NCBI RefSeq assembly: GCF_964194025.1
Contig: NC_134478.1
Coordinates: 6,076,001 to 6,140,000 of the forward strand
Reading direction: 5' to 3'
Source: Convolutriloba macropyga
Taxonomy: Eukaryota
DNA: 64,000 nt
The first letter of the stretch is position 1. Each line of letters opens with the position of its first letter. The notes beneath the pieces are model-generated. The model was given only the letters and a program-made list of their open reading frames with translations. It had not been told where the DNA came from and made no database searches. The position numbers and the translations under genes were made by a program. Of the stretch, positions 1-38,289 are shown one piece after another.

Positions 1-1104
1 CTTCTTCTCCATAGCAGGAGCAAAATTGCAAGACTGTTGATTGAAAAGGCGCACCATGACTGTGGCCATCAGGGTGTGGAACATGTGAAGGCTCACCTGC
101 AACAGACTTTCTTGATGATTGGATTGAGAAAAGTGCTGCGAAGTCTGGGGAAATACTGTTTCATTTGCAGACGATGGAGGGCAGACAATGTGAGACAGAA
201 GATGGCCGATCTTTCTGAATTCAGATTTCCAGTTGCAAACAAGCAGTACCCTTTCGTCAAAAAAGGAATGGACATGTTTGGACCTTTCTACATTGAGGAC
301 AAGAGAGAGGGCACCCAGATGCACTACGTCTGCTTGTTCACATGCCTGGTCACCAGAGCTGTCCACCTAGAAGTATGCCATGACCTCTCAACTGATTGTC
401 TTCTCATGACAATCCGCAGATTTGTCTCACGACGTGGATACCCTGACCTCATTGTGAGTGACAATGGCAAAAACTTCATTGGAGCCAACCAAGCAATGAA
501 GTTAAAGTTCCAGAGAAGCTACAAGCCAGACAATGAGTACATCAGACTGCAATTGGCTCAACAGAACATTCAGTGGACTTTCAACCCTCCATTGGCACCA
601 CACTTCGGAGGAGTCTGGGAAAGGCTGATACAGACCGCGAAGAGGAGTCTACTAATAGTGCTGGGCAGTCGGAAACTAACACTCTCAGTTTTCCAGACAG
701 TTGTGGCAGAGGCCGAGGCAATTTTGAACTCCAGGCCATTAACTCATGTGGGCTGCACCATCTCAGATGAGGGACCACTTACTCCGAATCACTTCCTCCT
801 TCGCCGACCTCACATGTGTTTGAAACCTCTTGTGAACAGCAACCAGCGGTTCTCCACTAAGGTCTTCAAGTTGACGCAGACACTACTTGATCACTACTGG
901 AGCAAGTTGCTGAAGGAATATGTTCCTGAGCTCAACAAGAGAACGAAGTGGCAAAGATCACATGATGAGCTGGATGAAGGTGACATTGTGTGGGTGCTCA
1001 AGGAGTTCACACCCAGAGGCATCTGGCCTCTTGGGAAGATTGTGAAAGCACACAGAGGTTCAGACGGGATAGCCAGGAGTTTCGACATCCAGACGGCTAC
1101 ATGA
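1..1104 (+). CDS. Bel/Pao LTR retrotransposon pol C-terminus (integrase), 5'-partial, with premature stop
   Basis: The frame is open from base 1. It has the H2C2 zinc finger (AHHDCGH...CFICRR), the DDE core (GMDMFGPF, IVSDNGKNF, GGVWERLI, LNSRPL) and the Pao-type C-terminus (LTPNHFL, W..EY..EL..R.KW, RGIWPLGKI, DGIARS). The frame continues past the TGA as MVQRPAVTLSRVF, so the stop is probably a GGA>TGA decay mutation. Confidence 0.95.
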   Translation, partial: LLLHSRSKIARLLIEKAHHDCGHQGVEHVKAHLQQTFLMIGLRKVLRSLGKYCFICRRWRADNVRQKMADLSEFRFPVANKQYPFVKKGMDMFGPFYIEDKREGTQMHYVCLFTCLVTRAVHLEVCHDLSTDCLLMTIRRFVSRRGYPDLIVSDNGKNFIGANQAMKLKFQRSYKPDNEYIRLQLAQQNIQWTFNPPLAPHFGGVWERLIQTAKRSLLIVLGSRKLTLSVFQTVVAEAEAILNSRPLTHVGCTISDEGPLTPNHFLLRRPHMCLKPLVNSNQRFSTKVFKLTQTLLDHYWSKLLKEYVPELNKRTKWQRSHDELDEGDIVWVLKEFTPRGIWPLGKIVKAHRGSDGIARSFDIQTAT

Positions 1105-1159
1105 ATGGTACAAAGACCAGCAGTAACCCTAAGCCGTGTGTTCCCACAATCGTCAGGTG

Positions 1160-1499
1160 CGCCGGAGGGTCACTGAAACAAGTTCATCGAAACACACACA
1201 CACACACACACACAAAACTCAATGTCGGAATGAAAACTTTTTGTTTTATTGTGTTTACATTTTCATATCAAATGCTTGCTTTTGTTGCCGGGAGTGTAAA
1301 GGAACCAAGTTCCCTTTTTATTTTATCTCCCCCCACACCCTCATTTTCCTCTCCCCACCTACACTTTCGTCCTCCAAAACTCTTTCATTTCATGATTTTC
1401 ATTCCCCCAACCTATTTTCGTTGAAGCTTTTTATATGTTGATTTTATTGAAGAAGTCAGAAGTGGTTGACGTTCACTTTCAATATTATTTATAGTAACG
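1160..1499 (+). mobile_element. Putative polypurine tract and 3' LTR of the Bel/Pao element, containing a (CA)n tract
   Basis: A purine-rich gccggaggg lies just after the integrase end, followed by ~330 bp of non-coding sequence ending ...tatagtaacg. The 5' LTR is outside the window, so the boundaries cannot be verified. Confidence 0.45.
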
Positions 1500-3970: not shown

Positions 3971-4664
3971 TACCCAGTATGAAGTCCGCGACCCAAGACA
4001 GGCATTGGCCAGACCGATCATAACCAAAGATAGATATTGGCCAGACCGAACAGACTTTGGCCACCCTTTGTCAGACCAAACAGACTTTGATCACCATTGG
4101 CCAGACCGAACAGACTTTCTCCAGTCCATTGGCCAGACTGAACAGAACCACGGCCAGACCGTTGTCCAGAGCGTCGGTCAGACCCTTGTCCATACCATAG
4201 TCCAGACCGAACAGAGTTTTGGTCAGACCGTTGTCCAGACCATCGGCCAGACATTTTTGACAATTTAACTACATATTGGCGAGTGTCGTTTTTTGTCAAA
4301 CCACATCAAAATTGTCTGTTAATAATTGTTTGAAAAAGTCGAGTTAGAAAGTGTATGATAGCCCATGTTGGGAAAAATTGACAATAACGATGTAAGAAGC
4401 GTCGGTTTTTATCGGTTTTTGTCGGTTTTATCGGTTTTGCTTGTAAGAAGCGTCAGTTTTTGACGGTTTTTTCGGTTTTTGACGATTTTGCCGAAATCGT
4501 CCGTATAGTTGTAAGGAGCGCCGGCTAAATCCTGCAGCAGAAATAAATGTGATCTTCACAACCCGTAAACAGACCGGAAAATGGGTATTGGCCAGACCCG
4601 TGTTGAGAAAGACCGACGAAAACGATGTAAGAAGCTATAGCTTGATATACCATAATCTGGGTTA
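3971..4664. repeat. MITE-like element with internal tandem arrays (GGCCAGACCGAACAGA units at 4005-4250; GTAAGAAGCGTCGGTTTT units at 4390-4520)
   Basis: The tandem units are directly visible, and short inverted ends tacccag...ctgggtta flank them. Confidence 0.55.
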
Positions 4665-6019: not shown

Positions 6020-8945
6020 GTTCCGACCCCTCTTGAGGGGGGAGGAACTATATATTCAAATGTTTTTTTTTTGTTCAGTCAATTTCGGCCGATCGATATA
6101 TTCATTGTAGAGAGTTGAGACTGGTATCATTAGAAAGCTTGTCCAGCGTAGAATATGGAATTAAAATGATATATTTTTTTGATTTTCGTTTTTTACAGGG
6201 AGATATCGAGGTTTAAACTTTCGAAAAAATAGAGTGAATTCCGTTGATTTCATTCACCTTTTTTCGGAATTTTTGACTAAAATTTTGACAACTTTGATAA
6301 ATTTCAATAGAATTTTTTAAGAAAACATTGTTAATTTTACGTTTTAAGACAAAATATATTGTCGGTTACTTTTATTGAATTTTTTTTTGTCACAAATTCT
6401 GGTCAAATATTTCACAAAATTAAGACCTTTTCATCAAAAACAGCACGAAATAAGTCCACTCTGATTAAATTTGCAGGAAGTGCACACCGAAACACCAATA
6501 ACACAACCGTTGTAGACTAAAAAGGGGGCTAATTCTACTTCAACTTCCGTTGAGAGTGCTCGCTCTGTAATTAAAACTTTGCCGTTTTTTGCTAACTGTA
6601 TTCGTTGATTATCAAGAACGCAGCATTTATTTTTGTTTTTCTTAACTAACAAAATATCTATATCAATGACACTCGAAAAATTAAATACTCCTAATGGACA
6701 ATCAGCATAACAGGACTAGTTTTGTGCCAATCTTGGACTGTTACAATCCAAAAATAATTCGGATTGTCATCAGTCGGTTTTTTAAATAAAAAATTCGATC
6801 TTTTTTATATTAATTAAATAACAGAACATTTTAAACCGAAGCTCACTAATGATAGGTCCTATCAACCTCTTAATTAGCTCCAAACTAATGTTTCTAGTTG
6901 ATTGCTTGAAAGCTTATGGTCGTTTGGATTTTTAAAGTATTTGATTTTTAAATAAAAAATGACTTATTGAACTTTGCCTCCATTTTTCTCCTAATTTGGT
7001 CATTTTGTAGCTTAGTGTCAGCAACCAAAAAGTGCTCCTTCTTTCTGCTAAATTAAAAATTAGTCTTTATTGTGGTTTAACGCCTTAAGTTATGGTGTTC
7101 CGGCTTTGATACTACTAGACTTCACAATTTCTTTTTTAGTTTTTATGTATTTGCCCAATTTTCATGTTTTCTAGTTTTGTCAAATTATCACGTTATTGGT
7201 TGTTTATATATCACATCCTCATGGTTAAATTAAAAAAACGCACAATTTTCAAAATTTAAATCCTTAAAAATATAGGCTGTGGTTCTTTACCGCTTCGACA
7301 ATACTTTCTCGAAGAACTTAATTGAAATTTTTAATTTCGTCTTTATTTGTCATTTTTACTTTGTCTTTTTAGTCCTATTTAATTTCCTGTACAATGACCC
7401 AGTTTAGTTGGCTTTTCATGGATGAGTATAAGATCCGATGTTCTGATATTTGAAGATAGATGATGGCTTTCAAGATTTTGAAAACAATTGTTTTCCAAAA
7501 TGAAAAAAAAAACACTTCAACTTCGCAATTTTGTTCCTTTTATTGTCTGTTTGTTACATGGTCTCGTTTATTAAAGCTTAAAGATGACACTTTTTTTGTC
7601 AAAGGAAGGCGTCAAAAGGGATTGAAGTAACAAAATCTATAGTTTTAAGAGAATTCGTTATGACTTTACTGGCTTCGACGCGGGTTTTTCACAAAAAAAA
7701 AGTAAATTAATTTTTGATTTTTGTCATATTTGACGTTCTTTTTATAGACATAAGATATATTCCGGATAATTGCAGGTCTCACGTGCTTCCTTTGAAAAAA
7801 TTAATGAATCTCTTCTATTTCTTCATTTTGTAATTAATGGCTTTCATGTCTTTGGAGATAAATTTTCGATGAAAACAAGTATTACATAATCTTGCTTTTT
7901 TTTCTTTTTTGTCTAATTGTTACCTTGTTTCATAAATGAGAGGTCACATAATACATTTCAAGGGAAGGTGTCAAAAGGGATTGGTGTCACAAAATCTAAT
8001 GTTTTTAGAGAATTCGCTATGACTTTACTGGCTTCCACACGGGTTTTTCACAAAAAAAAGTAAATAATTTCTTGATTTTTGTCATATTTGACGTTCTTTT
8101 GGTAGACGTAAGACGTATTCTGGATGATTGCAGGTCTCAAGGGCTTCTTTTGGAAGAATGGAGGAACCTTTTCAAATGTTTCATTTTGCAATTAAGGGCT
8201 TACATGTCTTTGAAAACTAATTTTTTTCGAAAAAAAATTAAATATTACAATTTTGCATTTTTTCTTATTGACTCCTTGTTACTTAGTTTCATTAATCAGC
8301 GGTCACATAATACATTATCGGTGTTCGACGAAAGTGCAATCGAACATATCTTGGGGGCCAAAGTATGGATTTACGGCTTCCAAAGCATTTTTTGGCAAGT
8401 TTTAATTGATTTTTTGTTTGTTGTCTATTTGTTGTTCTTTTTGTAACTGCATAAAAAAGTGAATACCGAGAGTCCTTAATTCCCTTCTGTAGAAGCATTG
8501 TAACTGTAAACCTATGGGAACAGAAACCTTTAAAGTTTCTGTTCTTTTTTGTCTAATTGTTACCAAGCCTTATTATGAACTGGTGAAAAACCATTTTTTT
8601 CTGGTGAAATACAAGTTATTTTGTTTATTTTCAGTTTTATCTGACGCTATTTTGACTTTGTTATTAAGTTTTGTTTTTTAAAACGGACATAAATTTTTTG
8701 ATGTAATTAATGTTTGTTGTTTGATTTTGCCCTTCGTCTTCGCTCGCTTTCTTAATATTGGCATATCCCATCAATCTAAAGCATAATTTTTTTTACTCCA
8801 CTGAGTTATTTGCTTTGGAAGCTATCTTTTCGTTCATCCACCAGTTTTTCTATCGGTTCCTCATTTGGTAGATAATTATTCCAAAATTGTGGATGAGCGG
8901 GGTCGGAACTTTATGTGCGATTGCACATTACCGAGCCTCCTTGTT
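6020..8945 (+). mobile_element. Helentron/Helitron2-like non-autonomous element, copy 1
   Basis: It starts with GTTCCGACCCC plus a hairpin (CCCCTC-tt-GAGGGG). The 3' sub-terminal inverted repeat GGGGTCGGAAC is at 8899-8909, followed by hairpin ATGTGC-gatt-GCACAT and ...CCTTGTTT. Flanks are T-rich with no clear TSD. It is homologous to four other copies in the window. Confidence 0.8.
6434..8775 (-). pseudogene. Decayed cargo ORF of element copy 1: ~120-aa tandem-repeat protein with Cys-rich C-terminus
   Basis: Internal repeats have a ~360-bp period (7603 vs 7962) with many synonymous differences in one minus-strand frame. ORF pieces are 8292-8498 and 6434-6652, with many stops and frameshifts. 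Confidence 0.65.
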
Positions 8946-10599
8946 TTTCATATTTTGCTAAATACCAAAGCAATAGGAGGTTCAAATTATGTTTGATTGA
9001 TTGATTGTAAATATAATTTTTCATTTTTGAGTTAATAAAATTCCGAATCTAAGATAAAACTTTCATTTCTCTATTTCACTTATGCTTAATCGGTTACTCG
9101 CTTTGTTGAACTCGGCTTCAAAATGATTTAGTTGGAACATAAGTTAGAATCGTTAGTCTGGAACAAAAGATATATATGCTTAAGTTTAAGATTTTCATGT
9201 TTGTTCCACAATAAAAAATTCCCAGTAATTGTCCACTTTTTCACTAAGACATTGTAAATGTGTTATTTTGTAAAAGTTAATATGGTACACTAATTTTGTT
9301 CACAAAAATTGTTCAACAATCGCTGTAGGTTTTATTCAATTTATTTACCCAAAACAAACTTGTTGCGCTAACATTTTGGCAATTTTCAAAATTGAATACT
9401 TTTCAGTTCATCAATTTTGAACTGATTTAATTGAAAACAACTAAATGGCCAAAAATGTCTGACTCCGCTTCTGCAAATTTGACTCATGGCACCTACCGCT
9501 TTTTATTCCAATTGATTATCTCTTTCAGCATACCTAGTACGATAACGAGCCTAATGAAAACGATGTGCAAAAGTTTCAACTCGCTACATTCTAATTAGTT
9601 TTATAGGAAATTTGATTCGCTGGATTTCTTCACAAAAAATATGTTTTCCCAAGAATGATTACTTCGAAAACAAGTAAACAAAATTTCAGGAGCTAAGTAA
9701 TTTAAAACTGCGAGCTGAGTGATTTCATTTTGATAGAAAGCATTCATGATATTAAATGCAATCTTGGGGCATCGAAAAGTCAAAAATTAGAAGACTAGGT
9801 TTTTCTGCCTAACCGTTGTTTTTTTTGGTAAAGAATGCCTGAAACTTGGTTTGATTCTTGACGTCTCACCGTCAGGGGACTGACAAACTAAAACGTTCAA
9901 ATTTCTCATTTAAGAGTTATTTAAACTTTAAAAAGCACTTTCAACTCTATTTATTAGGAACAAAAATTCATAATTCTTTGTTTCAGCCATTGAGAACGAC
10001 TCAGCGTGTTGCCTGAGTGGTACACTTTTCCAATGTAATTGTCCTTCGAAGCAGCATACCAAACAAAAAAAAACCGACGAAATAGCTTTTAATCTGAATC
10101 AGCACTATCATTTTATCAATTTTGTGTAATAAAACAGCTAAAATTGATGAATATTTTCCCAAAAAATGAAATGCAATTATTACCTGTTTTCCATTGACCT
10201 TGACGTATCATTTCATTTGGCCGTGACTAAAATAAATGCCAAACCAAAACTCATACAATTAGGTTCTGTTACTGAAAAAAAACTATATGTACTCTGTTGC
10301 ACCTCGCAATTGCGTAAAAATTTTGACATTCAGTTGTTCATTGGAAAATTTTAAGTTATGTAACGTTTTGTTGTAGAATTTATTATAACTATAGCTGAAA
10401 AAACATCAAAATTTCGTGCCGATGCTTCTTTCAAATGTCTCTGCAGAAAGTTATAAGTTATCGGCGAGTCACATTTGATGCTAAAAGTTCAGATAAAAGT
10501 TTCAACCACGGTTATAACACTGAATTCTTCTAGCGGGCAAATTTTTCGTTTGAACTTTGGAGTTTTTTTAAAGTTTGTTATGATGTTAATTACTCACTT

Positions 10600-10985
10600 T
10601 CTTTAAATGTAATTACTCACTTTCTTTTCTAAGTGGTAATGTCTTAATAAGAAAAAACAACAGAACTGAACAGCTAATTCTCTTAAGGTCGAGCAGTCGA
10701 TCAATACAAAAAAGAAGCATCCAAAAATGGAATAAACTTCCGCGTGAAGTCCGGATTATCAGATCACGCTCAAAGTTTAAACGCATGTTAAAACAGCATC
10801 TGCTCCAACAATTCAAACTTGTGCCGTTGGAAAGCAATGTTGGTGGCTTCAAAAGTTATTTTTACCTTTAGAAAACGGAACCACTAATTTTGATTTTTAA
10901 CATTGTAATAATTTTGTTTATATAATTTTAAACTTGTAATATTTAACCCCTGGGTTATATATTCAATTTACTTGTTTAAAAAAAA
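10600..10985 (+). mobile_element. LINE (CR1/L2-like) 3' stub
   Basis: The plus strand translates to ...WNKLPREVRIIRSRSKFKRMLKQHLLQQFKLVPLESNVGGFKSYFYL*, a typical RT-ORF2 C-terminus, followed by an A-tail. It is similar to the stub at 36940-37180. Confidence 0.7.
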
Positions 10986-13395: not shown

Positions 13396-16250
13396 GTTCC
13401 GACCCTCTTGAGGGGGGAGGAACTATATACTCAAATGGGTTTTTTTTTTTTTTTTGTTCAGTGAATTTTCGCCGATCGATACATTCATCGTAGAGAGTTG
13501 AGAGTGGTATCATTAGAAAGCTCGTCCAGCGTAGAATATGGAATTAAAAAGATTTTTTTAATTTTCGTTTTCTACAGGGAGTTATCGAGGTTTAAAGTTT
13601 TGTGAAAATAGTGTGAATTCCGTTGATTTTTATTCACATTTTACGGAATTTTCGCTAATTTTTGACCAAAATTTCGCCAATTTTGCTAAAATTTGTCAAC
13701 ATTTTTTAAAAACTTGTTGTTGATTTTATTTTTAAATATAAAAAATCTTCTCGGCTTTTCTTATTTTGAATTTCTTCTGAGAACTTCAGAGAAGTAGAGT
13801 GAATTCCCGTTGTTTTTATTCACATTTTCCGGAATTTTTGCCTAAATTTTCGTCAATTTTGCTAAAATTTGTTATAATTTTTAAGAATAGTGTCGTTGAT
13901 TTTATTTTTGAAGACGAACAAGCATTGTTCATTGTTTTGATTTAATTTTTTTGGTCAAAAAATGTGGATAAATATTTCAAAATTTAGCCTTTTTCAACAA
14001 AAACAGCACGAAATAAGCTACTTTAGTCCGTTTTGATTAAGTTTGCCGACAGTACACCTCCAAACAACACTCATACAATCTTTGTAGACTCAGAGGGGGG
14101 CTATTTCTACTTCAGAGTACGCTGAGAGTGCTCTGTAGTTAAAACTTTGCCTTTTTTTGCTAACTTTACTCGTTGATTATCAAAAATGCAGAACTTATTT
14201 TGAGTTTTCAACTAACAAATTATCTATATCTGCAACATTCGAAAATCAAATGTTCCTAACGGACAATAAGCAATAGCAGGGTTTGTTTTGGGCCATTCTT
14301 GGACTGCTACCACCCAAAGAAATCGGGTTGTAATCAGTCGGTCTTTTTTTTTTTAAAAAAAGGACCCTTTCTTTAAAAATAAAAAACAGAACATATCGAA
14401 TCAATGCTCAGGAGTGATAGGTCCAACCAGTTTGCTTACTAAAAAGCTCCAAGCTAATCCATTTAAATTTTAACTTGAAAGTTTATGGTCGTTTCTTTTA
14501 AAAATAATTGACTTTTCAATAAATAATGGCTTAATTAAGTTTTCCTCTATTTTTTTCTTAATTTGTTCAACTTCCAGCTTAGTCTCTGCAAAAAAAGAAT
14601 GCTTCTTCTTTCTACTGATTTAACATTTCTTCTCGGTTGCAGTTTTAAGCCTGAAGTTATTGTTTTCTGGCTTTGATACTACAAGATTTCAGATTTTTGT
14701 TTGTTTCGATATTTGCCAGTTTTTCACGTTTCCGAATTTTGTCACATTATCACATTATTGACAGTTCTCTTGTCACATTATTAGCGTTAAAAATAAAGCA
14801 CAATTGAACATATTGAAATCCTGTATGATATACATAATCGTTTTAACGGCCTCGACGCCTCTTTCTTGAAGAAATCAATTGAATTTTTTAATTTTGTTTT
14901 TAACTGTCATTTATACTTTGTCGTTTCGGTCGTATGAAATTTCCTGCATAGTGATAACTTTCATTGGCTTTTCGTGGAAGAATAGAAGAACCGATATTCT
15001 GATATTAGTAAATAGCTGATGGCTTTCATGACTTTGAAAACAATCGTTTTCCAAAATTAAAAAAAAAAAACTTTTTAACTTCGCAATTTTGTTCTTTTTA
15101 TGTTTCTTTTTGTTAGCTAATCTCGTTATTTCATTACAGGTCAAATATGACATTATGGGTGTCAAGGGAATAAAAGGGATTGGTGTCCCAAAATCTTTTT
15201 TTTTAATGAATTTGTTATGACCTTAGTGGCTTCGACACCGGTTTTTCACAAAAATGTAAATTAATTTGATTTTTGTCTTATTTGACGTTCTTTTTGTAGA
15301 TGCGAGAAATATTCTGGGTAACTGCAGGTCTCGAGGGCTTCCTTTTTTTGAATAAACGACCCTATTCAAATAGTTCTGTTTGTAATTAATGCCTTTTATG
15401 ACATTGAATGTAATTTTTATTCGAAAAAAAAATTGAAATTATTTCATACTTTAGCACTTCGCTTTTTTGTCTACTTGTTACCTAGTCTTACTAATGAATG
15501 GCCACGTACTACTTTATAGCTGTTTGATGAAGGCGCAATCGAATATATTTTGAGGGACAAAATATGGCTCGAGGGTTTTGGCAGCGTTTTCTGGCAAGTT
15601 TCAATTGAAATTTTGTTTGTTTTTTTTGTTGTTCATTTTAGCCGCTTTAAAAAATGAATAAGGACAGGTCCTAATGCCCTTCTCTAGAAACAGTGGTAAT
15701 TGTAAATTTGTGGTAATGTTAATTGATTCCTAATGGTATTTATTACTTTGAAGTTAACTGTTTCAAAAAAATAAGTTATATTTTTCACTTTAATGTTTTT
15801 GTTCTTTTTTGTATAATTGTTACCAAACCTTTTTATGGACTGGTCGCATATGATTTCTGGTGATTTATTAGTTATTTTTGTTTAGTTTTAGGTTTATCTG
15901 ACGGTATGTTGACTTTGTTATTAAATTTAGTTTTTAAGAGGGAAAAAAATTTTTTGATGTAAATAATGTTTGTTGCTGTTGTTGTTGTTTGTTTTTGACG
16001 TTCATCTTGACTCGCTTTCTTAATATTGACATATTACATCAAGCTAATGCATCAATTTTTAACTCCACTGAGTTATTTGCTTTGGAGGCTATCTTATCGT
16101 TCATACAGAATTTTTTGAAAAAGACTTTTCGCAAAAAATAATTTTTGGGTTTTTCTATCTGTTCCTCATTTGCTAGACAATTATGCCAAAATTGTGGATG
16201 GGCGGGGTCGGAACTTTATGTGCCATCGCACATTACCGAGCCGCCTTGTT
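13396..16250 (+). mobile_element. Helentron/Helitron2-like non-autonomous element, copy 2
   Basis: It has the same termini as copy 1 (GTTCCGACCCTCTTGAGGG...; GGGGTCGGAAC-tttATGTGCcatcGCACAT-taccgagccgccttgttt) and is closely similar to copy 3 throughout. It has an internal ~180-bp duplication near 13610/13800. Cargo fragment ORF 14911-15165 (-). Confidence 0.82.
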
Positions 16251-20900: not shown

Positions 20901-23900
20901 AAAGTTGAAATAAGCGAACTTTTGAAAAACGCCAAAAACGTGCAATTGAGCATCAATGTGCTCATTTGATTGTCAACGTTTTCTCCATTAAGTTGTCATT
21001 CATCAATTTTTTCTACATGTTTCAAATTTGAACTTTGACCTTTGAACTCTAATATGTGGCTTTTGAAACCTTCGTTTATTTCAACTTTATGGGACACGCT
21101 ATACATAGCTTCTTTGTACCATGTTTTAATTATAGAAGCAAATTGTAAAGGTATTTTTGTTCCAAGAAAATGGAAGGTTTTGGCAACTATCACCCAACTT
21201 TCACTCTATTTCACTAAGCTCACTTTTGCTCAGTCTTTGTTGCGATGACATATTAGATCAAATACAACTTAAAATGATAATTAATCACCTTTTTGAGAAC
21301 CATTTTCAAATCTTCGTTGAGGTGTCTCTGCCGCTATTAAAAAATATTGTGAATTACAGAAGTGGGAGCAAAAATACAAAGTTAAGCCTTCAATGTTTTT
21401 TGACAAACGTGCGTCAATTGGTTGGTCAACACTACCACAAAGAAAGGGGATGACTCAATACATATCCTTATATAGGGAGGTTTCTCTAAGCTCAAATTCT
21501 CATTTTTCTTATTTTTCAAATTTTGATAAACTGTTTTCATTTGACATTATCTATCCTTTTTGTGCAATTCAGGTGACATTATACAAACAGAAACAATGCC
21601 CCAACCATTGCCGCAAAATGACGTCACTGTCCCAACAATTTCGAAAATTGTCGATTCAATAGTCTCTTCTGAAAAACTTCGACATCTGCCTGCCGTTAAC
21701 TCAAACATTTATCCAACTGCAACTTCGGAATTCGCAAATTTAAACTTGGTACCTTCTACGACAGACCATTTTACTTTAAAAAAGAATAACGTGAACAGCA
21801 TTGAAAACCAACTTGCAAAAGACGTTTCTGTTTTCACTGAGTTATCACACACAATTTCAGTAGGAAATATGACAGAGAAAAATAGCAGTATAGACCCTAA
21901 AAAGATTGACGTTATTGAAACTATAGAATACAGTTCTTCAGAGAAAGAAGACAAAATCTGCGAAACGAGTTGGACTTCATGGTCTGATTGTGTTGCCGAC
22001 AATCTTTGCGGCTCGGGTCACCGAAACCGCAGCCGAATTGATCCGAAGTGCGAACAAATTATCACTTCAGAAGGTTGTTCTGCTGAGCCGTGTTTGAAAA
22101 TTTCTGATGTTAAAGCGGGGTCGCCGATGAGTTTTTGCACGAAGACTTGCGGCGGCGGTTCGATGCTGAGACGGGCCGCGTGTTTGCAAATGGATTTAGA
22201 AGCTGCTTTGACAAACCAAAAAAAGCGATCACTGCAGGCAAAAGTCGGTGCAACGAAATACTTGGAAGTCGATAAGAAGGTATGTCTGATAAATGGAATT
22301 GCGTCAGATGAGGACTTCCAAACAAGTCAGGAATCCTGCTGCGAACATCGCTGCGACAACACAAAAGGTTTGGAATTTCTAATTGACAACTTTATTTGTA
22401 TAATACTGTGTTTCCTGATTTATTTGTTTATACTTTGTTGGTGAAATCATTTTAAGAAGAAGCTGATGATAGACCAAGTCCAAATCCAGAAAATCAATCG
22501 AAAGCGATGCAAGAAATCGTCGGTTTGTTTGGTCTGGGACGTAAGGAAACTTCGGCATGTTTGATTTCTTAGATTCAGTTTTTTTGGTAACGAAACGTAA
22601 AAAAATGCTCGGTGTGATCCGTTTTAAATGTGTTCCGAAATCGTCGGAATGTTCAGTTTCTTTGATTCGGTTCGAATTTTCCAAATTTAGATTTTTTTGT
22701 TTATAATGTAGTCAAATGTTAAGATAGCTTTATAATCGCAGGAGTTTCAAACGTACCTCTTTAAAAATTACTTCAAAAAAGGGCAAATTGATTGACTTTA
22801 TTCTTCAGCTCATTTATAAAATTAGGTGACAAATATGGAGTTCTTGTTTGCTTTGGAAGTTAAAAATTTAAGGCACTTGTTAAATGTTGACGTATACATC
22901 AAATCAAGCTCAATGAGCTTCGATATTATCATGAGAAATCGAATAAGTAAGTGATCGCACCTAAAAAGCAAACACAATTTTCTTTTGTTTTAAAAGCGAG
23001 CAAAACCCACAAACACTCTAGTTAATAAAACATAGCGACGATAGCCAGAAAAAACCTAAAGCGCCTTCATCGATTTTGCCTAACTAACAAAGACACTAAC
23101 GATTTTCTCACTCTTAAAAGCGATGGTTTCTGTGCTAGGGAGGTCCCAGCCAAAGGCCGCGATGGCCTCAGAACAGATTATCAGTGCACTTTTTGAGACG
23201 GGTGAGGGGTTGGGTGTCACAATTTGCATTCACTCTGAAATTCAGCTGTCCAGAACATTCAGAATGTTTTTGACTGTGCACGATAAACGAGCAATTGGAA
23301 TTTGGACTGTCCGGAGTGTTTTCAGAGAGCCGGTTTTTTAGTATGATTCTTTGTCTGAACAGTGTAAAAAGTGACATGATCATAATCTGTTCATAGTAAA
23401 AAAAAACAGACTGAGAAATACTATGATTCAGCACTGATTTTTGATATTACTATGGTCCTGGTGTTACATGTTTTCACGTTCACATGTTTTCAATTTCACA
23501 TTTGATATGATATCGCTTAGAATCCATAAAAATTGTATCAACTTTCGAGTCAAGATTTTGTTTCGTTCTATCAAGTCTTAAGAGGCGTCATAGACACGTT
23601 TTTACTGATATTGAAGCAAATGTTGACGAACATCCAATAACAAGTGCTGACGGGTCTTTTTTCAAATATTTGAAACGAACAATTGCTGAACTTTCGCTAG
23701 AATGACGTTTAGTATACGTAAATATGCAGACACTGTTAATTTTTAAATTTCATAAAATGTGAATTCAAATAACACGTGCGCTGAAATTTTGTACAAAATG
23801 CCCATTGACACGTGCAGAATTTTATATTAAAGGGCTCATTAAGCAATTGCAACTAAACTATAGACACATATAAAAATCCCGAGCATTCAAGGCCAATGAT

Positions 23901-25684
23901 ATCGGTTGATTTCGTTTTTTTTTGGAGATTAAAATGTATCGTGCTATACCATGCTAAGATGACGTCCATAGCCATGTTTAATGCAACCTCATATTTTTTG
24001 AAAGGATTTTTTCAAAGTCAATTTGCGCTAAATTTTAAGGCACTTTGAACTTGTTTCCAGCACTCATTTACAAATTGCTCAATTGCAAATCTAAAAATTT
24101 TAATTTAGGACTAATTAATCATGATTATCGACATTTGCGCATAAAAGATAAACAGATGCCTGGAATTCTGGTCCCAAGACTTGGTCATTGTCCTCTGTCC
24201 ACTCAAAAAGAACTTTATACTAGAAAAGTATTGATTAACATTAAAACTCATTATGATTTTTTCCTGGTCACCTTAAAATCATGAGAATTAATCAAATTGA
24301 AAATCCAGAAAAAAATCACTTTTATTTTAACCACCGCAAGCACAAAATGAATTCTGATTTTACAATTTTCCGTGACCAATCTAAGGTTTTTGATCAGGCA
24401 ATCATTGCTCTGGAAAAGTTTTTGCGGTAGTTTTACAGTAAAAGACGCTTTTTTTTAAATTTGAATTTCGCTCAAAGAGCTAATTTTACTAAGCCCAAGT
24501 GCGTTCGGATTTGTCTCAGGTCAGATTACCATGGATTTTATAGGTCTGGCAGATAGAGCATTCGAAAAATTGAACTGGGTATCTTCTGCTAGCGAGGGAT
24601 GGGCCAGAAGTCGGTTCCGTCTAGAATCTGAACTTAGGATTTTTTACCTGTGCAGAATTTTTGAATAAATTTACTCACTTATTTTACTAGTTTTCGCTTT
24701 TAATATCTCAATGCATTATAAAATCAATCCATACATACAAACCGCGTGGACAAATCTGCAGTGCCCAATGAAGAAATCTCGCATAACTTTTCCATTTTGG
24801 TTTGTATATGAATATCTAAAAATTGTCTTTCAAAATTTTGGGAAAATATGAGATGAGAGAAAATTCCCGAACTGTCCAGTTTTCAAAAAATATGTGTCAA
24901 TCTACATGGAGTGAGAAATTTCTCGAGAAATTGGAACAACTTGCCACTAGAAATCCGAAAAGAAAAAAACAAAACAAGTTTAAGGCGAAAATAACTACAG
25001 AAATGATGAAATTACATGAACGTGTTCCAATAGATAGACAAGTACAAGTATTTAGAAATGTTTTACTAGTATTTTAAGGACCAAACTTTTCATATGCTTT
25101 TAAAGTGATTGTTAAATGTAAGCGTTTAGCCGAACTTTTGTTATGGTTGTAAAATTTTGAATTTATATTTAACAGATTTAAAAAAATGTGGAAACTATTC
25201 TACACAGCGTGTTTTCTTACCAGAAATGAAATTGCAATATTTTCATTTGCATGTGTTAAGCAATATAGGATTTGCTTATGAATAGTTTATAAGCGTTTTT
25301 TTTCCAGGAAGCATATTTGGAGTTCTTTCAAATGGGGCACTGACTATGAAATACACTGGCGATGACTCAAAAAACGACCCCTACGACAAGCAACGGAGTC
25401 AGTTTTTCTGTGTGAACCATCTAGCCGTGATTGATGTCGGGTTACCAGAACTTGCTGACTACTTCTGCAACCAAGTTGGTTATAACTTGAGTTATAACAA
25501 ACGCAGTTTGAAGTTTGTTGCTGACAAACCAGTACCCAACGAATGCTCTTGTGTTGGAGGGTTCATAGACGTTCTAATCTACAAAAACCAGAAATCAGGA
25601 AACAAGACGCAGCAATTTGACATTGCTTGGACTACAGCGCTTAGGTTTGGTGCAGCTCATCAATTTGTAACTTTGCAATGTTGA
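17967..25684 (+). CDS. Type II membrane protein with S/T-rich stalk, thrombospondin type-1 repeats and a C-terminal Cys-rich (SRCR-like) domain; exons 17967-18519, 21573-22367, 25308-25684 (~574 aa; an upstream exon may exist)
   Basis: Signal anchor ILCCFIVLLIVLVILGFLLAKFVVF. TSP1 motifs WTSWSDC...CGSGHRNRSR and CTKTCGGGSMLRRAAC. Both introns are GT-AG and phase 1 and join the three ORFs in frame (...TTR-S-DII; NTK-G-SIFGV). An acceptor at 17935 with an open frame suggests a further 5' exon. Confidence 0.8.
18660..18780. repeat. ~21-bp minisatellite (AAAATTGTTTTTCAGACTTTG-like)
   Basis: About five degenerate tandem units in intron 1 of the TSP1 gene. Confidence 0.6.
24590..25190 (+). mobile_element. 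LINE 3' stub, same family as the 3' end at 38290-38690
   Basis: RNWNNLPLEIRK...HERVPIDRQVQVFRNV with frameshifts. It is clearly homologous to the reverse complement of 38300-38650. Confidence 0.7.
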
Positions 25685-26534: not shown

Positions 26535-29208
26535 AACAAAGAGGATCGGTAATGTGTGTTTGCACAATGTTCCTACCCAGCTCATTCACATTCCTGACTT
26601 AATTGGCTACCAAATGATGAAGAGATAGAAAACGTTTAAAAACATACATATCTTTCAACTGACCACTGATGGAATAAGAAAGCGTCAATTTAGAGGGCCG
26701 ACAAAACTCATTGCTAATAGGGCTACTAGAGAAGACTACGGAAAAAGTCAAAAATCAAAAATTATTTACGACCAAAAACCCAATGTATATATTTAAAAAA
26801 CCCCTAACAAACAATGAGATCATATAAAACCCGAACTGAATAAGTTAACCTGTACTTCATTAGGTAAGATTTGAGATCGGTCAATAAAGTACTAGTACTA
26901 GTAGAGACTCGGTAACAGGTCGGCTAAAATAGCAATCAGCGCGAAATTCAAAAACTAGCTTTCTACTTTTGAAAACAACCAAATTCATGTCGATCAGAAT
27001 CAATACCTAACAACTCGACTTATTAACGAGGTTAGTGTACACCTCATAGAAATCAATTGAGAACTGTCTTTATCCAATATACATCAGCCTACAACAAAGA
27101 GATCGGTAAAGACAAAAGGCAAAATCAATTAAATTTAACGAGAAAGCGGTGTCGGAACCGTTAAAAACATCAGCTATTCGTGGAAAACTTCATATATTGT
27201 CGATTTCACAATTGTTCAACGCTAGATTGGAAATTATATTAGTGTGATAATGTTGCAAGAAAACATAAAAAAAACTCAGAAGTTGGCGAACGTCCAAAAA
27301 TCACAATTCGCTTACAAAATTGTGTAGTATTAAAGCCAAGAAACTCTTAGTCGAAAAAAAAACATTATAAACAATGAATTTTTGCTCATTGGAGAAGGTA
27401 TGCAACTTGTCTTTACAGAGATGAAGCTAAAAAATTGACAGAATTTAGAGAGATCACAAAAATCGCAAACAAACCATAGGCTTTCAACTTAAAACAAAAA
27501 CACATTAACTGGCAACTGTCCAGGAAGCTACGAACATACGAACATACAGAATACGAACAGAACTCAAAAATTCACAAACAATTTCTTTGAAGACAGTGTT
27601 GAAACATTAAAACTATAAGACATTTAAAATATTTAAAAAATTGAATACAATAGTTGACATTTTTGCTGGCTATTCTTTTGATTTTATACGTCTTCATTCG
27701 AAAGGATTCTTATGAAACAGACAAGATAAATAACCACAAAAATTTACCAGTATCGAAAACTTACGAATTTCCTATAAAAAAAATTCTAAGCATTAAAGAC
27801 GTGAGTCAAGCCATAATCAACAGCGTAAAATTTGTGTAGACCAACAGAAAATTGATGAGCTCTGACAATAACAAAATAACGTCACTTTTGACGGCAATGA
27901 GTACAAAATATCCAGAGTACAAAATTTTTTTGCTTTAAAAAAGAAAATCAAATGAAAGTCCTGAAAACCGCGAGCTATAAACTGTAACAGTTAAATATGT
28001 TCGTTTGACCATCCATAGAAAGATTGAGGCTTTTGGTTGTCAAGAATATGTCGTACAAAAACCAAACCACGACAGTTAGAAGCAAAAAACCAAAAAAAAT
28101 TAATGAAATCTGCGAGGTAAAAGTTTCGCGGCCGTAAAATTTGTAAGCTATTCTCGAGAAATGTGTAAATAATTATTTTGCGCTTTTTTTATGCCAATTT
28201 CTATAAATATCCTTTAAAAAATTTGAAAAGGGAACACTTTACTACCTCGACTATAGGCAATTTTTCAAAAATTACGAAACTGTTATGAAGTTACGCTAAG
28301 AAAGCCGAGAAACCACTAGTTATAAATTAAAAAACAAATTCTAACATCACATGAAAAAGGTCGTTCCCTGCATATATTGAACTTTATCTACATGTGGACA
28401 GAAATAAGATTTGCAAAATTTTCAAAACTTTCAAACTTTGCTAAAATCTTCCTAAAACAAATATTTTCAATGTCCTAATAATCCAAGATGTGTCCTCTTC
28501 AAGCCAACATTTTGCTGCGCTTTCGGCAAAAACAATTAATTATTCCATACGTTTGCAAAAAGAGCAATTAGAAACTGAAAGATTTCAATGAATTAAAAAT
28601 AAATGATGCATGTTGTAAAATTCTTGAGTTACAATTTCGAAAAACCGACAAAATTTTAACTCCAAAGGACCCCTATAGGAAACCAATTCGCAGTTAACTT
28701 TTTTTGCAGGTTTCAGATGTTTTGACAGCTGATTTTAGGTCTGTATTTCCGGTATAATTATACAAAAAGGTATAAAAAACGTATTTGGAGCCATTTTTGA
28801 TTAAAAAATGTCTGAAATTCGACAGATTCAATCAAAAAATATTAACCAAAAGACCCGCATAAAACAAATCAATAGGAATTCTTTATTCATAAAAATAAAA
28901 CCAATAACATTGTTGCTGGACATTTTAACAAATTTTTGCAAAAAGACGAAAATTTGATCTAAAATTGTGAATTTGGTAGGAAAATGTGAATAAAAACAAA
29001 AGTATTCCGACTATATTCTCACAATTTTAAACCTCGATACCTCCTTGTGAAAAAAAAAATAGTTTAATTTCCATGCTCTATGCTGGATGGGCTTTCTGAC
29101 GATACCAGTCTCAAATCTCTACGATGAATATATCGATCGGTCAAAATTGACTGAACAAAAAAAACCCATTGGAGTATATAGTTCCTCCCCCCACAAGTGG
29201 GTCGGAAC
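26535..29208 (-). mobile_element. Helentron/Helitron2-like non-autonomous element, copy 5 (inverted, strongly diverged)
   Basis: The reverse complement from 29208 reads GTTCCGACCCACTTGTGGGGGGAGGAACTATATACTCC. The other end (26535-26590, aacaaagaggatcggtaatgtgtgtttgcacaatgttcctaccc) matches the inverted 3' terminus. The KNKxCML...KNRQNFN segment near 28600 matches the cargo C-terminus. Confidence 0.75.
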
Positions 29209-31464: not shown

Positions 31465-34264
31465 TAAACACAAATTTTAATCACATTCTTAACAACTCTT
31501 TGCAATCTAGTCTATTTAATTACCAAAATGAACCCAAAATTAGTCTTTCGAAGAACTTTTAAATTTCGTAATTTCCAATTTCAAAGCATGCAAGTACAAA
31601 AAAATCTTGCTTATAAGTGAAAACATACCAAGTTTTTTCTCTCTAATTTTTACCGAAAACCAACTCAATAGTCTTTGCACTCCAATATATCAATTGAAAT
31701 AATCAATTCGAAATGAGCTCTCACGCAATGGGTCACCAAAAATAGTTTGCAAGAACTCAATTATGAGATGGAAAAAACTCCAGCCCTGATGAAAGCCATC
31801 GCTTTTAGACCCCAATTTTGCAGCTAAAAAGCACTAATAAACCTGGAATCAAGATCTAAGGTGAGGAGTTTCTCCTGCAAGAAGTCATTGTACGGGTTTC
31901 GTTCATTTTTTCATACTTGTGTTCACGCATAATCAGACCTTCTTAAAGCTGTAAAGTACAACGTGTTAGAATATGATTAAAAAGTAGAGCAAACTTCTCG
32001 GAAAAAATTCTTTGACGCCCTAAACAAGCTTTTTGCAGAAACTAATCGAAAGACCATATGAAAGTTGGGAAGAGAATTGCTTCGTTTGTTTTCCAAACTA
32101 ATTTAGGGCTGACGCTTACATCAAAACAACCGACGCAACTACTAAATAATAAACTATTCCAACGACAAATTTTGTTTTCAAAGAGACGTAGATTGAGGTA
32201 TGTGTTTGTTGTCAGCGTGATATTTTGCCAAAACATTTAAATAAAAAACGCAAAACTGATACTTTAGGAAACTAAATTAAATATTCGAAGAAATAAATTT
32301 GAAGAGCGTTCTGAAACCTTTTGAAAATTTCAGATCTGTCCGGGGCGCAAGCCAAATTATTTTATATCAAATATGTTCTATCATACACTTAGACCCTCAA
32401 TTAACCGCAAAATAAGCAGCCGTGTTTAGGAATAGTGAAAATTTGTTTAGAATAGCAGCAGAAGTCACTGTGTATAATGGTGCAACGTTTTTCGAACAAA
32501 TGGATTATTATGGTGCAAAAAAATTCGGACTAGGGAGAAGTAATGTCGTATCTTACAACCGCGTTTATTTTGGGACATATTTAATTTTGTAAATTAGTGA
32601 AATTTAGATCATTTAAAATTAAGGAATTCAAGCATGTAAGCATGAAAGAGTCAGTCGAAAAGTGAAGTTGGAAGAATGTTCTAGAACAAAAGCGTTAAAG
32701 TGATCAAGCAATAATTTTGCATAAAAACGACACACACGTTTACACAATTGCTTGAAACTTCGTTCGAGAAAATTTAAATTATTAAGTGTGTTGTGATTAG
32801 TTTAAAAGCTCACGTAATTTATGTGTTAATGATCATATCCAATCCATTAATGAGTAATATTAAATTGGACATGAAATAAATTATAGTTTTAACCAGCATT
32901 ACTTGTTAAAAAAACTGTTTTCAGAGGTTTGAAAAATCGACATAGCAAAAGCCAGTCTATTAAGTTGAGGTTGTTTATGTTAAAATTTCAAGCAATAATG
33001 TGATAAATTTTCGTCGATTTCAGTGCATTAACTGACAGTGCATCATCTGATACAAAAACGATTTCAAGGTGAAAATAATTTGTGGTACTGTTTCTACTGG
33101 CCAATACGCAAATAGTAAATGGAAACGTATGGTGATCGGGAACTTTTGGCTGAGAATAATTCACTGTTGTCTGCTACTAAAAGTTTTAAATTAAATTGTT
33201 CTTTCAGTTAAGAATTTGCTGTTCATAGGATATTGGAAGTTCTGAGTTTCTCACAAGTGTTTTTTGAGCGTGCTTGCTCAGTGACAGGTTGGTAAAAATA
33301 CTCGAAAGGATTTAAAGAAAAGTTTATATGTATATAAAAATATGAATTATTGACATATTTTTGACAAAGCCTTCAATGCAAAAAGTCTCTATTTCGCTCA
33401 AAAATATTTCCAAGTTTCCTAATCTAATCAAATTCAGTGAAATGAGAACTCATTGTTGTCACTTTTGTATAATAATCAGCGAACGCGCTCAACTTTTTCA
33501 ATGATAAAATTAAAAAAAACTCAAGGGTTGAAATCAAATTTATGCCGATAGAAAAAAAACGTTTCTAGAAACTTTTAAAAAAATCAAGGGCAGAAAACCA
33601 GGATATAAAATAATATATATGTACTTTTCAATATAATCTTAGTTTTAGAAAAATTGTTCCAAGCATAAGTTGAAACTCAAAATTTAAAAATCCGCACACT
33701 TGAACAACAAAATTTCCCTAGGACATCAAAAACCTAATTGGAAATCAAAGAAAAGATAGCGCTTCAATTTATTCGTACCAATCGAAAATAAATATTTTTG
33801 AAGAAAATTTGACAATCATCCCAAAGTGCAGAAAACCGGCTAATAAAAGTGCTGCCCGGGTTGGGCTCCCAGTGAATCCCATCGATGGATCATTTTCCTA
33901 AAAGTCCATCGATGTTTCATCGATGGATCATTACCACTTTGTCGCTGATCATAGAAATTCCATTGATGGGATTTCACTGGGTCATTGAAAAACCATCATT
34001 TCCTCAACATGTTTTTAGCATTCAATTAAAACCTATTTCCTTCATTGGACGAGAAATATTAACCTCATTAACTAAAAAAAAACTCTTAAAAATTCAAATG
34101 TTTTAGCAAGCTTTGGCTCTGAAAATACGGCTAGATCAATGGTAGGTGGTGTCGATTGACGGTTATCAACGGGAAAATTTAATAGAGCAAAAAACGATCA
34201 GCAAAACTCTGTCGAAAATCTCATTTGTGCCATTATTTATCACCCTTTTTCAATGTTATCAAAT

Positions 34265-35221
34265 TTAAACTCGGTTATATGAGTTAATTGCATAGAAACC
34301 CAAACCATAAAGATGCGATATTTTGGAATGCACATCCAAGAACTGGTCCCTCTCATCCAGGGCTCTAAACATGACGTCACTGTGGTCTCTCTGGTTAGCT
34401 GTTTGGTCACAATTATCCCTGTAGAACCTTGCCACCCATTTGAGGTCAAGAGATGGTTTGACGAACTCATTAGCTGCTTTCAAGTAACGGTTGAGGTTGA
34501 ATAGATCCGCGTATCTGATGTCACGTATTGCAATTGATGATTCTGTTATGACTTGTTTTAGAAGAGCGGCACTTGAGTCGTAAAGTTTGATCCAAGTGTC
34601 CATAATTTTCCTGTTTTTTTTTAAAAAAAAAAATGATCATAACACATATTATTTGAAACTTTTTTTGACAACTTCAATTTGCTTTTTCCTCAATTTCATT
34701 CAGAGCTTCTTTGAACTTAGAAAACTATATCGAAACAATTCGTTCACTATAGTTTCATTCAGATATAGATGGTTAAAATTGGAGTTATATTACTCATTTT
34801 TGAATATCTTTTTTTCGCAAGATAACCACTTTTGCAAGATTATTGCAAGATAACCATCCGGTCTTGACTGGGGTAAGCCGAAACAGAATCCCCACCCCTG
34901 GCATATCTCTCCATAACAGTTATTTCTGCAACTTTATAATAGCATATATAAATTTTATTGTATAGCAAATGACCTTGTAAGAGACCAAATGACAAAATGC
35001 TCTCTGATAATTTTGACATTTATGTAATTTTTAGTCATATCTTACCATGATTTGGGTCTCTTGAAATTGAGCCAGTATATGAACTGTCTCATGTCTTCCG
35101 GGTGTATGAGGGGAAAGTTAAACCAAGCTCTGTCGCACAGAATTCGAACAACAGTCGGCGCCTTTCGTCTGAAGACTTCCGAACGTAGTTTGACTTCGGA
35201 TATGGCTCGTCTGTGGTCCAT
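34265..35221 (-). CDS. Orphan 173-aa protein, paralog A (exons 35046-35221, 34265-34610)
   Basis: ATG at 35221, donor TG|GTAAG and acceptor AACAG|G join in frame: MDHRRAISEVKLRSEVFRRKAPTVVRILCDRAWFNFPLIHPEDMRQFIYWLNFKRPKSWKIMDTWIKL... Many differences from paralog B are synonymous. Confidence 0.75.
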
Positions 35222-36031
35222 TTTGACTCGGATTGAATAGAGCTGTGATCAATTTTGGAACAAAATCAACAAAGTAGTGTTTAACAACAAAAAGGCAAGG
35301 AATTGATTTGTTAAAATAACAGCAATAACAATAACTATACCAAAAAATGGGTACCTATGATGTTATTTGCATGTTTTGGAAAAGCCGCTTTCTTCATGGA
35401 AGCTGAAAATCGTGAGAGCAATAAATGAGAAAAAAGGTTATTGGTTAACCTATTTTTAAGATTTTCATTTACATGGGGTTAAAAACTGATCAAAGATGTG
35501 TTTCGTGGCTTTTTAGTTTATGATCAAAAAAGGTATGAAAAATCGTTATAGTTATAGCATGCATTTATAGAGAACTACGTATGAGAGACATTAGCTTTAA
35601 AGTACATATGAATATATTGTAAAAACAAGTGAACAAATTTTATTACTCACTCGAAGTTCTTACTGCTCTATGCAAACTATGTAAAACATCAACTTAAAAG
35701 AGAAGCAAATTACATTTGCGTAACAATGAACAAACTGCTTTTTTAAAACCAAGAACCTAAAATATGAAAATTTTCTTCGAAATATTTTAAAGTTTTCTTT
35801 TTTTGAAACATGTAAATTACTCACCCTATAACCCTAAGGTTAGATATCTACATGCTCTAATCTTTAGCAAGCTTTGGCTCTGAAAATACGGCTAGATCAA
35901 TGGTAGGTGGTGTCGATTGACGGTTATCAACGGGAAACTTTAATACAGCAAAAAACGATCAGCAAATTTCTGCCGAAAATCTTATTTGTGTCATAACTTG
36001 TCATCACCTTTCAATGTGATCAACCTTAGAC

Positions 36032-37367
36032 TCAGTTATATGAGTTAATTGGATAGAAACCCAAACCATAAAGATGCGATATTTTGGAATGCACATCCAA
36101 GAACTGGTCCCTCTCATCCAGGGCTCTAAACATGACGTCACTATGGTCTCTCTGGTTCGCTGTTTGGTCACAATTATCCCTGTAGAACTGTGCCACCCAC
36201 TTGAGGTCAAGAGAGGGTTTGACGAACTCATTAGCTGCTTTTAAGTAACGGTTGAGGTTGAACAGATCCGCGTATTTGATGTCACGTATTGCAATTGATG
36301 ATTCAGATATGACCTGTTTTAGAAGAGCTGCACTTGAGTCGTAAAGTTTGATCCAATTCTCCATTATTTTCCTGTTTTTTTTTTAAAAAATAGATCATAA
36401 CACCAATTATTTAAAACTTTTTTTGACAACTTCAATTTATTTTTGCCTAAATTTCATTCAGAGCTTCTTTGAACTTAAAAAACTATATCAAAACAATTCG
36501 TTCACTATAGTTTATTTCAGATATAGATGGTTGATATTGGAGTTATATTACTCATTTTTGAATATGTTTTATCGCAAGAATTTTGCAAGATAACCATTTT
36601 TCGCAAGTTTTTTTGCAAGATAACCATCCGGTCTTGACTGGGGTAAGCCGAAACAGAATACCCACCCCTCGCATATCTCTCCATAACAGTTATTATCGGA
36701 ACTTTATAACGGTATAAATAAATTTTAATTTATAGGCTCACTTTGTAAGAGACAAAACGACTTAAATGCTCTCTGATAATTTTGACATTTGTGTAATTTT
36801 TTGTCATATATATTTTTTGAAACATGTAAATTACTCAGACTATAACCCTAAGGTTAGATATCTACATGCTTTAAAATGTTAAATTAATTAATCAGCATTG
36901 TTATTAATATAATAATCTTCAAATTGTGGCTGTTCGTTTTCATAGGTAAACATAGGATTTGAAGGCTCCAATTTGTCTATTAACGGGTACTTTTTTGTGT
37001 TGATCGAGCAAAAACTCGGTTAAAATATTTTTAAAGCAAGTTTTACTGTTAAAAGTTCTTATTGAAGAGGGCAATTTGTTCCATTTTTGAGCGCTTTTCA
37101 AGATCAAAGATTTGTTACTCCACTTCGTTTTCGTTTTCTTTTTTATGATAATTAGTTTTGTTTTCTTGTTCTGTCTAGCGTTATATCTTACCATGATTTG
37201 GGTCTCTTGAAATTGAGCCAGTATATGAACTGTCTCATGTCTTCCGGGTGTATGAGGGGAAAGTTAAACCAAGCTCTGTCGCACAGAATACGAACAACAG
37301 TCGGCGCCTTTCGTCTGAAGACTTCCGAACGTAGTTTGACTTCGGATATGGCTCGTCTGTGGTCCAT
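36032..37367 (-). CDS. Orphan 171-aa protein, paralog B (exons 37192-37367, 36032-36371)
   Basis: Same structure and splice phases as paralog A. A CGA>TGA change shortens the C-terminus by two residues. Confidence 0.75.
36810..37183 (-). mobile_element. 5'-truncated LINE insertion in the intron of paralog B
   Basis: It encodes the RT C-terminus KWNKLPSSIRTFNSKTCFKNIL...GAFKSYVYL and is absent from the paralog A intron. It sits a few bases inside the GTAAG donor with a possible ATAT duplication. Confidence 0.8.
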
Positions 37368-38280: not shown

Positions 38281-38289
38281 TTTAAATCT

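Follow-up and report, generated by a model that had tools for sequence, protein, structure and literature searches.

A young and abundant family of probable non-autonomous Helentron/Helitron2-type elements with an apparently non-coding interior in Convolutriloba macropyga

The window analysed here, a stretch of 64 kb from Convolutriloba macropyga (NC_134478.1), harbours five related elements, numbered copies 1 to 5, which were delimited by self-comparison of the window. Judged from their sequences, we consider them, with a probability of about 0.9, as one family of non-autonomous HLE2 (Helentron/Helitron2-type) rolling-circle transposons similar to HINE and DINE-1, which would encode nothing. 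An earlier note on this DNA had described five related elements at these places, and the self-comparison bore this out, the fifth ending at about 62276. It had also assigned them to the non-autonomous Helitron2/Helentron elements of the DINE-1/HINE type, which every terminal feature that we tested supports, and had read their interior as a decayed gene, which did not survive the analysis given below. The elements and the main features within them are as follows.

6020-8945, plus strand: copy 1, 2,926 bp, full-length, older subfamily, about 75% identical to copies 2 and 4 across its whole length
7529-8316, plus strand: tandem duplication in copy 1, two units of about 358-367 bp, about 78-82% alike (Tandem Repeats Finder and self-BLAST)
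13396-16250, plus strand: copy 2, 2,855 bp, very young, high-copy subfamily
26535-29208, minus strand: copy 3, 2,674 bp, old and remote, both ends recognisable, interior about 60% identical to copy 2
50161-52825, plus strand: copy 4, 2,665 bp, 91% identical to copy 2
55647-55929, plus strand: 5' part of copy 5, equivalent to consensus positions 1-470
55930-59900, minus strand: nested insertion of about 4 kb, splitting copy 5 at consensus position ~470
59901-62276, plus strand: interior of copy 5, colinear with consensus positions 470-2644 at about 56-60%, 3' terminus missing

Five related copies and their shared interior

Copies 2 and 4 are the closest pair (91%) and, together with copy 1, can be aligned over their full length. 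At standard sensitivity, copies 3 and 5 match the others just over the first ~240-430 bp, with an identity of 72-83%, copy 3 additionally over the last ~100 bp. Permissive scoring revealed that the interiors of both are also colinear with that of copy 2, at about 58-62%; as the same settings yielded no match at all for reversed sequences and for six other AT-rich stretches of the window, these interior matches represent true distant homology. The claim that the same interior is carried by copies of differing divergence therefore stands, as colinear DNA homology in all five (91%, ~75% and ~58-62%). The relatedness proposed earlier was wrong, the close partner of copy 2 being copy 4 and not copy 3; copies 3 and 5 are remote. 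Copy 5 is without its last ~200 bp and shows no recognisable 3' terminus. The insert splitting it had been called a nested long interspersed nuclear element, and it does contain a decayed reverse-transcriptase fragment of the non-long-terminal-repeat type (56801-57073) with a YADD motif, whose match to RVT_1 (E=3e-5) lies under the Pfam cut-off; a 24-bp tandem array at 59750-59889 is located inside the same insert.

On the sequence evidence, the interior is best described as about 2 kb of non-coding DNA derived from a common non-autonomous ancestor and prone to tandem duplication, having been kept across the subfamilies because of shared descent rather than selection at the protein level. Colinear homology over ~2 kb, down to an identity of ~58% between subfamilies, could also be expected if the interior were non-coding but functional, being cis-acting in mobilisation or a source of regulatory or small RNAs, and maintained by selection on the element. 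The base composition of the young consensus, read on the strand with the 5'-GTTCC end, may be taken in the same sense, with 1155 T versus 806 A (and 473 G versus 420 C). We regard such a function as very improbable: the interior has diverged at a much higher pace than the ends (58-62% versus 72-83% identity), it tolerates both tandem expansion (two units in copy 1) and a nested insertion of ~4 kb (copy 5), and an Rfam search of the whole window found no RNA family. Moreover, some relatives of copy 3 resemble it just over the first ~680-730 bp and lie ~1 kb apart, and these coordinates suggest that short members exist which lack most of the interior. As for the strand bias itself, the T-rich plus strand may have made the antisense strand look gene-like, and it might stem from deamination of a transferred single strand or merely from the many T-runs.

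Expansion of internal units is also indicated elsewhere in the genome. A relative of copy 1 at C15:33137104-33143159 has, by its coordinates, an interior unit of ~633 bp in five tandem copies (C15:33.138-33.141 Mb), and at C5:123805-129928 the coordinates point to an array of ~6 kb whose units, each of ~1 kb, resemble copy 3 in its first ~680 bp. The latter suggests, on coordinates, short members devoid of most of the interior, and both may, on the same basis, be satellite-like arrays derived from the copy 1-5 family.

Termini, insertion site and classification

The 5' end GTTCCGACC with its hairpin is common to all five copies of the window, and the first ~240 bp are their best-conserved part, with a mean column identity of 79%. 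A 3' sub-terminal repeat of the GGTCGGAAC type followed by a palindrome occurs in copies 1 to 4, copy 3 displaying the version GGTAGGAAC. The earlier account of a 5' end plus hairpin in all copies and a 3' repeat plus hairpin in four of them was thus accurate. In copy 2, the terminal features, including the sub-terminal inverted repeats (subTIRs), are arranged as follows.

13396-13423, plus strand: 5' terminus of copy 2, subTIR GTTCCGACCC at nt 1-10 within a two-tier hairpin
13440-13455, plus strand: T-run behind the 5' hairpin, then GTT, in place of the HINE microsatellite
16205-16214, plus strand: 3' subTIR GGGTCGGAAC, reverse complement of nt 1-10, 46-36 nt from the 3' end
16218-16233, plus strand: 3' palindrome ATGTGC-N4-GCACAT, 33-17 nt from the 3' end

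The 5' hairpin has an outer stem GTTCC/GGAAC, with GGAAC at nt 24-28, and an inner stem CCCTC/GAGGG; in copies 3 and 5, as in an old family member (L019old), the inner stem reads CCCAC..GTGGG, a compensatory change from T:A to A:T. At the other end, the palindrome is nested within an outer stem GGTCGG/CCGA(G)CC, and the free tail CCTTGTT closes copy 2 at 16250. Folded as single-stranded DNA, the last 61 nt form this two-tier hairpin with z of -3.1 (copy 2, -13.7 kcal/mol) and -3.3, none of 200 shuffles being as stable; for the old copy 3, only a weak fold results. Thirty young, near-identical genomic copies (labelled L###), each an independent insertion, were retrieved with their flanks; GTTCCGACCC at nt 1-10 and GGGTCGGAAC at 46-36 nt from the 3' end are present in all 30 as well as in window copies 1, 2 and 4. 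The T-run (consensus nt 45-57) differs in length, with 10 to 16 T in young copies that are otherwise 99.6% identical to the consensus.

Every one of the 30 young copies opens with GTTCCGACC, and the closing bases are CCTTGTT except in L029 and L030, where they are ..GTC. The five bases directly 5' of the element read T (29/30), T/A (29/30), N, T (29/30) and T (30/30), with C raised at position -6 (13/30), while the bases 3' of the element display no strong preference. At position -3 the flank is variable (G in 9, A in 14 and T in 7 copies), whereas the matching spot of the element's TTGTT end is constantly G; since the element ends in TTGTT regardless of the middle base of the flank, TTNTT is not duplicated. 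A 2-bp duplication of TT is contradicted by the three informative copies, namely L024, with a flank ending in ..TGT, and the above-mentioned L029 and L030. For L017, a diverged paralogous empty site aligns without a gap over the junction (...CATTGTT·GATGAAT...), which confirms the element boundaries. Insertion occurs directly after (C)TTNTT without a target-site duplication (TSD), and the T-rich, duplication-free insertion sites reported before are hence borne out by the 30 flanks, the three informative copies and the one empty site. If one ambiguous terminal T is given to each side, the insertion follows the rule "between T and T" of HLE2 (PMC11417382).

Elements of this kind have been classified differently in the past, and a cut-and-paste element with terminal inverted repeats, resembling a miniature inverted-repeat transposable element and creating a TSD of TT or TTNTT, as once assumed for DINE-1, would account for the 10-bp inverted repeat. 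It also profits from the fact that flank and element both end in TT, leaving a 2-bp duplication formally ambiguous in 27 of the 30 copies. Nevertheless, we consider this very unlikely, as the inverted repeat is asymmetric, one arm forming the 5' terminus and the other lying 36-46 nt inside the 3' end, as hairpins are found at both ends and as exact head-to-tail junctions exist, in addition to the variable base at flank position -3, set against the constant G of the element, and the three copies contradicting a TT duplication.

The family is better compared with the HINE/DINE-1 elements, for which Thomas, Vadnagara and Pritham (2014; PMC4067079) gave position ranges for the subTIR, the inverted repeat and the palindrome. 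The positions of the subTIR, inverted repeat, T-run and palindrome found here lie within the published HINE ranges (PMC4067079; PMC7492417), and the features characterising HINEs, namely asymmetric subTIRs, a 3' palindrome, a TT target without TSD and no coding capacity, are all present. In common with the elements of PMC4067079, the family is non-coding and has asymmetric subTIRs of ~10-13 bp, one at the 5' end and its counterpart ~36-60 nt before the 3' end; an inverted repeat is located beside the 5' subTIR, the left arm includes a tract of simple repeats, a palindrome is found within 8-35 nt of the 3' terminus, and some copies have central tandem repeats; a T-rich or TT target that is left unmodified and a very high copy number are shared, too. 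Unlike them, it has subTIR sequences of its own, with the subTIR starting from nt 1 unless the flanking TT is counted in, its simple repeat is a homopolymer T-run instead of a microsatellite of 3-8 nt, and its interior is ~2 kb of mostly unique sequence. The Pacific oyster element Cg_HINE (Vojvoda Zeljko et al. 2020, PMC7492417) likewise combines a left subTIR, inverted repeat and microsatellite with a right subTIR and palindrome, and has internal units able to expand in tandem; its structure centres on satellite-like arrays of 140-180-bp monomers, whereas only occasional expansions of a long unique interior are seen here.

Like HLE2 (Helitron2 plus Helentron) as defined by HELIANO (PMC11417382), our family has inverted repeats that are short and terminal, the right one being followed by a stem-loop, and inserts at T/T, and Rep genes bearing DUF6570, reported there as an HLE2 marker, are found in the same genome; of the family itself, only the non-autonomous form was seen. 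Canonical Helitrons (HLE1) have the rolling-circle logic, a 3' hairpin, the lack of a TSD and abundant non-autonomous derivatives in common with it, but none of their 5' TC, 3' CTRR, A/T insertion and lack of inverted repeats applies here. Membership in HLE1 was rejected in view of the ends GTTCC... and ...CCTTGTT, the TT flank and the 10-bp inverted repeat. What is new is the sequence of this family, notable only for its youth and abundance, the kind of element being already known; a clean description of the exact ends, target motif and terminal folds of a young, abundant non-autonomous HLE2 family has nevertheless been gained.

Some findings weigh against this classification. With its 2.85 kb and an interior that is largely unique, the element may exceed in length the HINEs described in PMC4067079 and PMC7492417. 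Besides, the earlier note had proposed to look for an autonomous Rep/helicase partner with the same ends, and none was found among the loci compared: a DUF6570 profile search of the genome revealed 18 HLE2-type loci (DUF6570 plus Rep/Helitron_like_N; for example C417:108833, C615:12272, C996:1400, C4578:3809, C11:52324326, C16:33949406, C6:50315150 and C4:44900912) with frames of up to 1,348 amino acids (aa), and the ends and whole elements of the family gave no match when compared with 20 Rep loci. Using a 33-nt 3' signature composed of subTIR and palindrome, no listed occurrence was located near a Rep match on contig C1 and the early part of C2, which were cross-matched. The 18 loci represent a second Rep lineage, which combines an RGS-x-H-x-H motif with DUF6570, and canonical HLE1-type Helitron Reps (GLPHAH) are present likewise. 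An endonuclease domain in the partner would mark it as a strict Helentron, its lack as a Helitron2.

Coding potential of the interior

The interior of every copy had been interpreted as a decayed open reading frame (ORF) antisense to the element, and this as a stable, element-encoded accessory gene and possibly an undescribed protein family. In the window, no copy has an ORF of more than 124 aa on either strand. A decayed gene should be open in the master copy, and the consensus of the 30 young copies was therefore tested: it contains 42-73 stops per frame over all six frames (49-64 per antisense frame), and its longest open stretch of 103 codons does not go beyond chance, shuffled sequences of the same composition giving 85±17 codons with a 95th percentile of 116. 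Neither lag-3 autocorrelation nor local phase bias could be detected (p=0.51 for copies 2/4, 0.998 for 1/2 and 0.945 for 1/4), and 80 of the 91 indels are frame-breaking, those divisible by three amounting to 3/15 (copies 2/4), 2/36 (1/2) and 6/40 (1/4). Pfam searches with the ten longest open stretches returned nothing above threshold, the sub-threshold hits to XAP5 (E=0.017) and FraC (E=0.09) being attributable to chance. For the remote interiors, translated comparison gave short matches only, weaker than the DNA alignments, whereas a conserved protein should produce the reverse pattern.

A database search with the 103-codon antisense stretch retrieved 18 ORF calls from ENA assemblies, all of them short, unnamed and devoid of domains, which are evidently other copies of the same repeat. 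They contain an antisense ORF of ~80 aa recurring in 18 clusters with 58-99% identity, which might speak for a micropeptide; aligned with each other, they conserve neither start nor stop nor local frame. Comparing copy 4 with copy 2, this ORF displays 2 synonymous and 14 nonsynonymous changes and 2 stops, spread over the codon positions as 6/9/5, and copy 1 differs from copy 2 by 3 synonymous and 32 nonsynonymous changes, 2 stops and frameshifting indels. An open stretch of 145 codons in copy 1 (8009-8443) is in sense orientation, and its counterparts in copy 2, copy 4, the young consensus and its own sister unit are interrupted by frameshifts and 4-5 stops. That unit belongs to the tandem duplication of copy 1, where copies 2 and 4 have a single unit; the differences between the two units are even over the three phases (23/30/22, p=0.47), and in none of the six frames does either unit have fewer than 4 stops. 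It is this 358-bp duplication that gave rise to the impression of a repeat protein.

In consequence, that the interior is or was an antisense accessory gene for a repeat protein, be it in the form of a multi-exon gene or of a micropeptide ORF, is hardly credible: the homology of the interior in all five copies, the recurring ~80-aa ORF and the 145-codon stretch are faced by a recently active master full of stops in six frames, missing periodicity, frame-breaking indels, changes to amino acids and stops outnumbering synonymous ones, and no credible Pfam match. We rejected the new transposon-borne protein family on these grounds, as well as a ~120-codon protein repeat in copy 1, which is a plain tandem duplication with phase-even differences. 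With a consensus lacking a long ORF and substitutions free of coding constraint, the claims of an antisense ORF and of an accessory gene are both withdrawn, and the value of this part is mainly housekeeping, two false leads on one stretch having been removed.

Abundance, mobilisation and genomic surroundings

In the assembly searched (1.18 Gb), the 33-nt 3' signature has 1,232 exact occurrences, distributed alike over both strands, with none for the reversed control, and a first look at copies 1, 2 and 3 gave 7,000-10,700 candidates. For copy 2, 40 or more full-length relatives reach an identity of 98-100%, and the 30 young copies reveal a median identity of 99.6% to their own consensus. The nearest genomic relatives of copy 1 are 85-88% identical, while copy 3 is without a close relative, the best reaching 74% over the first ~730 bp; 12 of the 30 young copies have older family members as neighbours at a distance of up to 1.5 kb. 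The family is thus very abundant, and one subfamily, being ~99.6% identical to its consensus, has moved very recently. Young copies imply a Rep/helicase transposase that is active now or was so very recently, making this genome a reasonable place to seek a living Helentron/Helitron2, whose transposition was without a biochemical study as of 2014 (PMC4067079).

Mobilisation of the family would be brought about by an HLE2-type Rep/helicase transposase supplied in trans. Its HUH nuclease, guided by the terminal hairpins, would make one nick behind the TT of the 5' junction and another behind the ...CTTGTT that closes the element, and the strand would then be joined at a look-alike (C)TTNTT target, the interior presumably hitch-hiking with the cis-acting ends. 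That target and 3' end resemble each other gives a small hint as to how the nuclease selects its sites.

This resemblance extends into the element, as both its 3' end and the T-run plus GTT behind the 5' hairpin match the target motif. The young copy L025 is inserted head-to-tail, directly after the terminus of a diverged member, and genome-wide we counted 3 exact head-to-tail junctions and 1 nest in a T-run, with none in the controls. Though small, these numbers exceed a rough chance estimate (<0.5), yet such cases are rare against at least 1,232 copies. Strong self-targeting in the copy 1-5 family is accordingly unsupported, with weak enrichment only. Tentatively, the transposase might cut behind one and the same motif, (C)TTNTT, in three places, namely the 5' junction of the donor, the 3' terminus of the element itself and the target, in which case elements would carry landing sites for one another and seed head-to-tail arrays, nested stacks and satellites; we hold this to be rather doubtful.

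Ten weak matches to the Helitron Rep domain (E of 1e-6 to 1e-8) were noticed in very long uninterrupted frames, eight of them measuring 2,468-2,515 aa and two more, on C10, 1,322 and 1,419 aa. They are situated at C10:43.25-43.64 Mb, C4:51.229 and 51.244 Mb, C2:35.749 Mb and C807:6497, five of the ten falling within 0.4 Mb on C10. These loci may be intact large Rep/helicase genes or domesticated copies.

Within the window, copy 4 is flanked by two minus-strand ORFs with complementary parts of a galactosyltransferase (PF01762), covering profile positions 2-107 at 52984-53754 and 101-166 at 47922-48530; it is probably inserted antisense within a ~4.4-kb intron of a beta-1,3-galactosyltransferase-like gene. 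At 37-1424 (plus strand), the window start cuts an integrase fragment (rve, Integrase_H2C2, DUF5641) of a long-terminal-repeat retrotransposon, probably BEL/Pao-like. Another repeat is duplicated at 34102-37933, where 34102-35040 corresponds to 35863-36809 (90%) and 35034-35787 to 37180-37933 (96.6%), and an inverted pair, 24811-25187 and 38276-38668, is 80% identical; both are unrelated to the Helentron-like family. An open frame of 294 aa at 21560-22444 (plus strand) carries a thrombospondin type 1 repeat (PF00090, E=6e-7) and is probably an exon of a host gene. Finally, imperfect tandem repeats of 24-45 bp, with units such as ACCATCGGCCAGACCGTTGTCCAG, occupy 4036-4252 in a more G+C-rich region and may be repeats within the coding sequence of a retroelement or a host gene.

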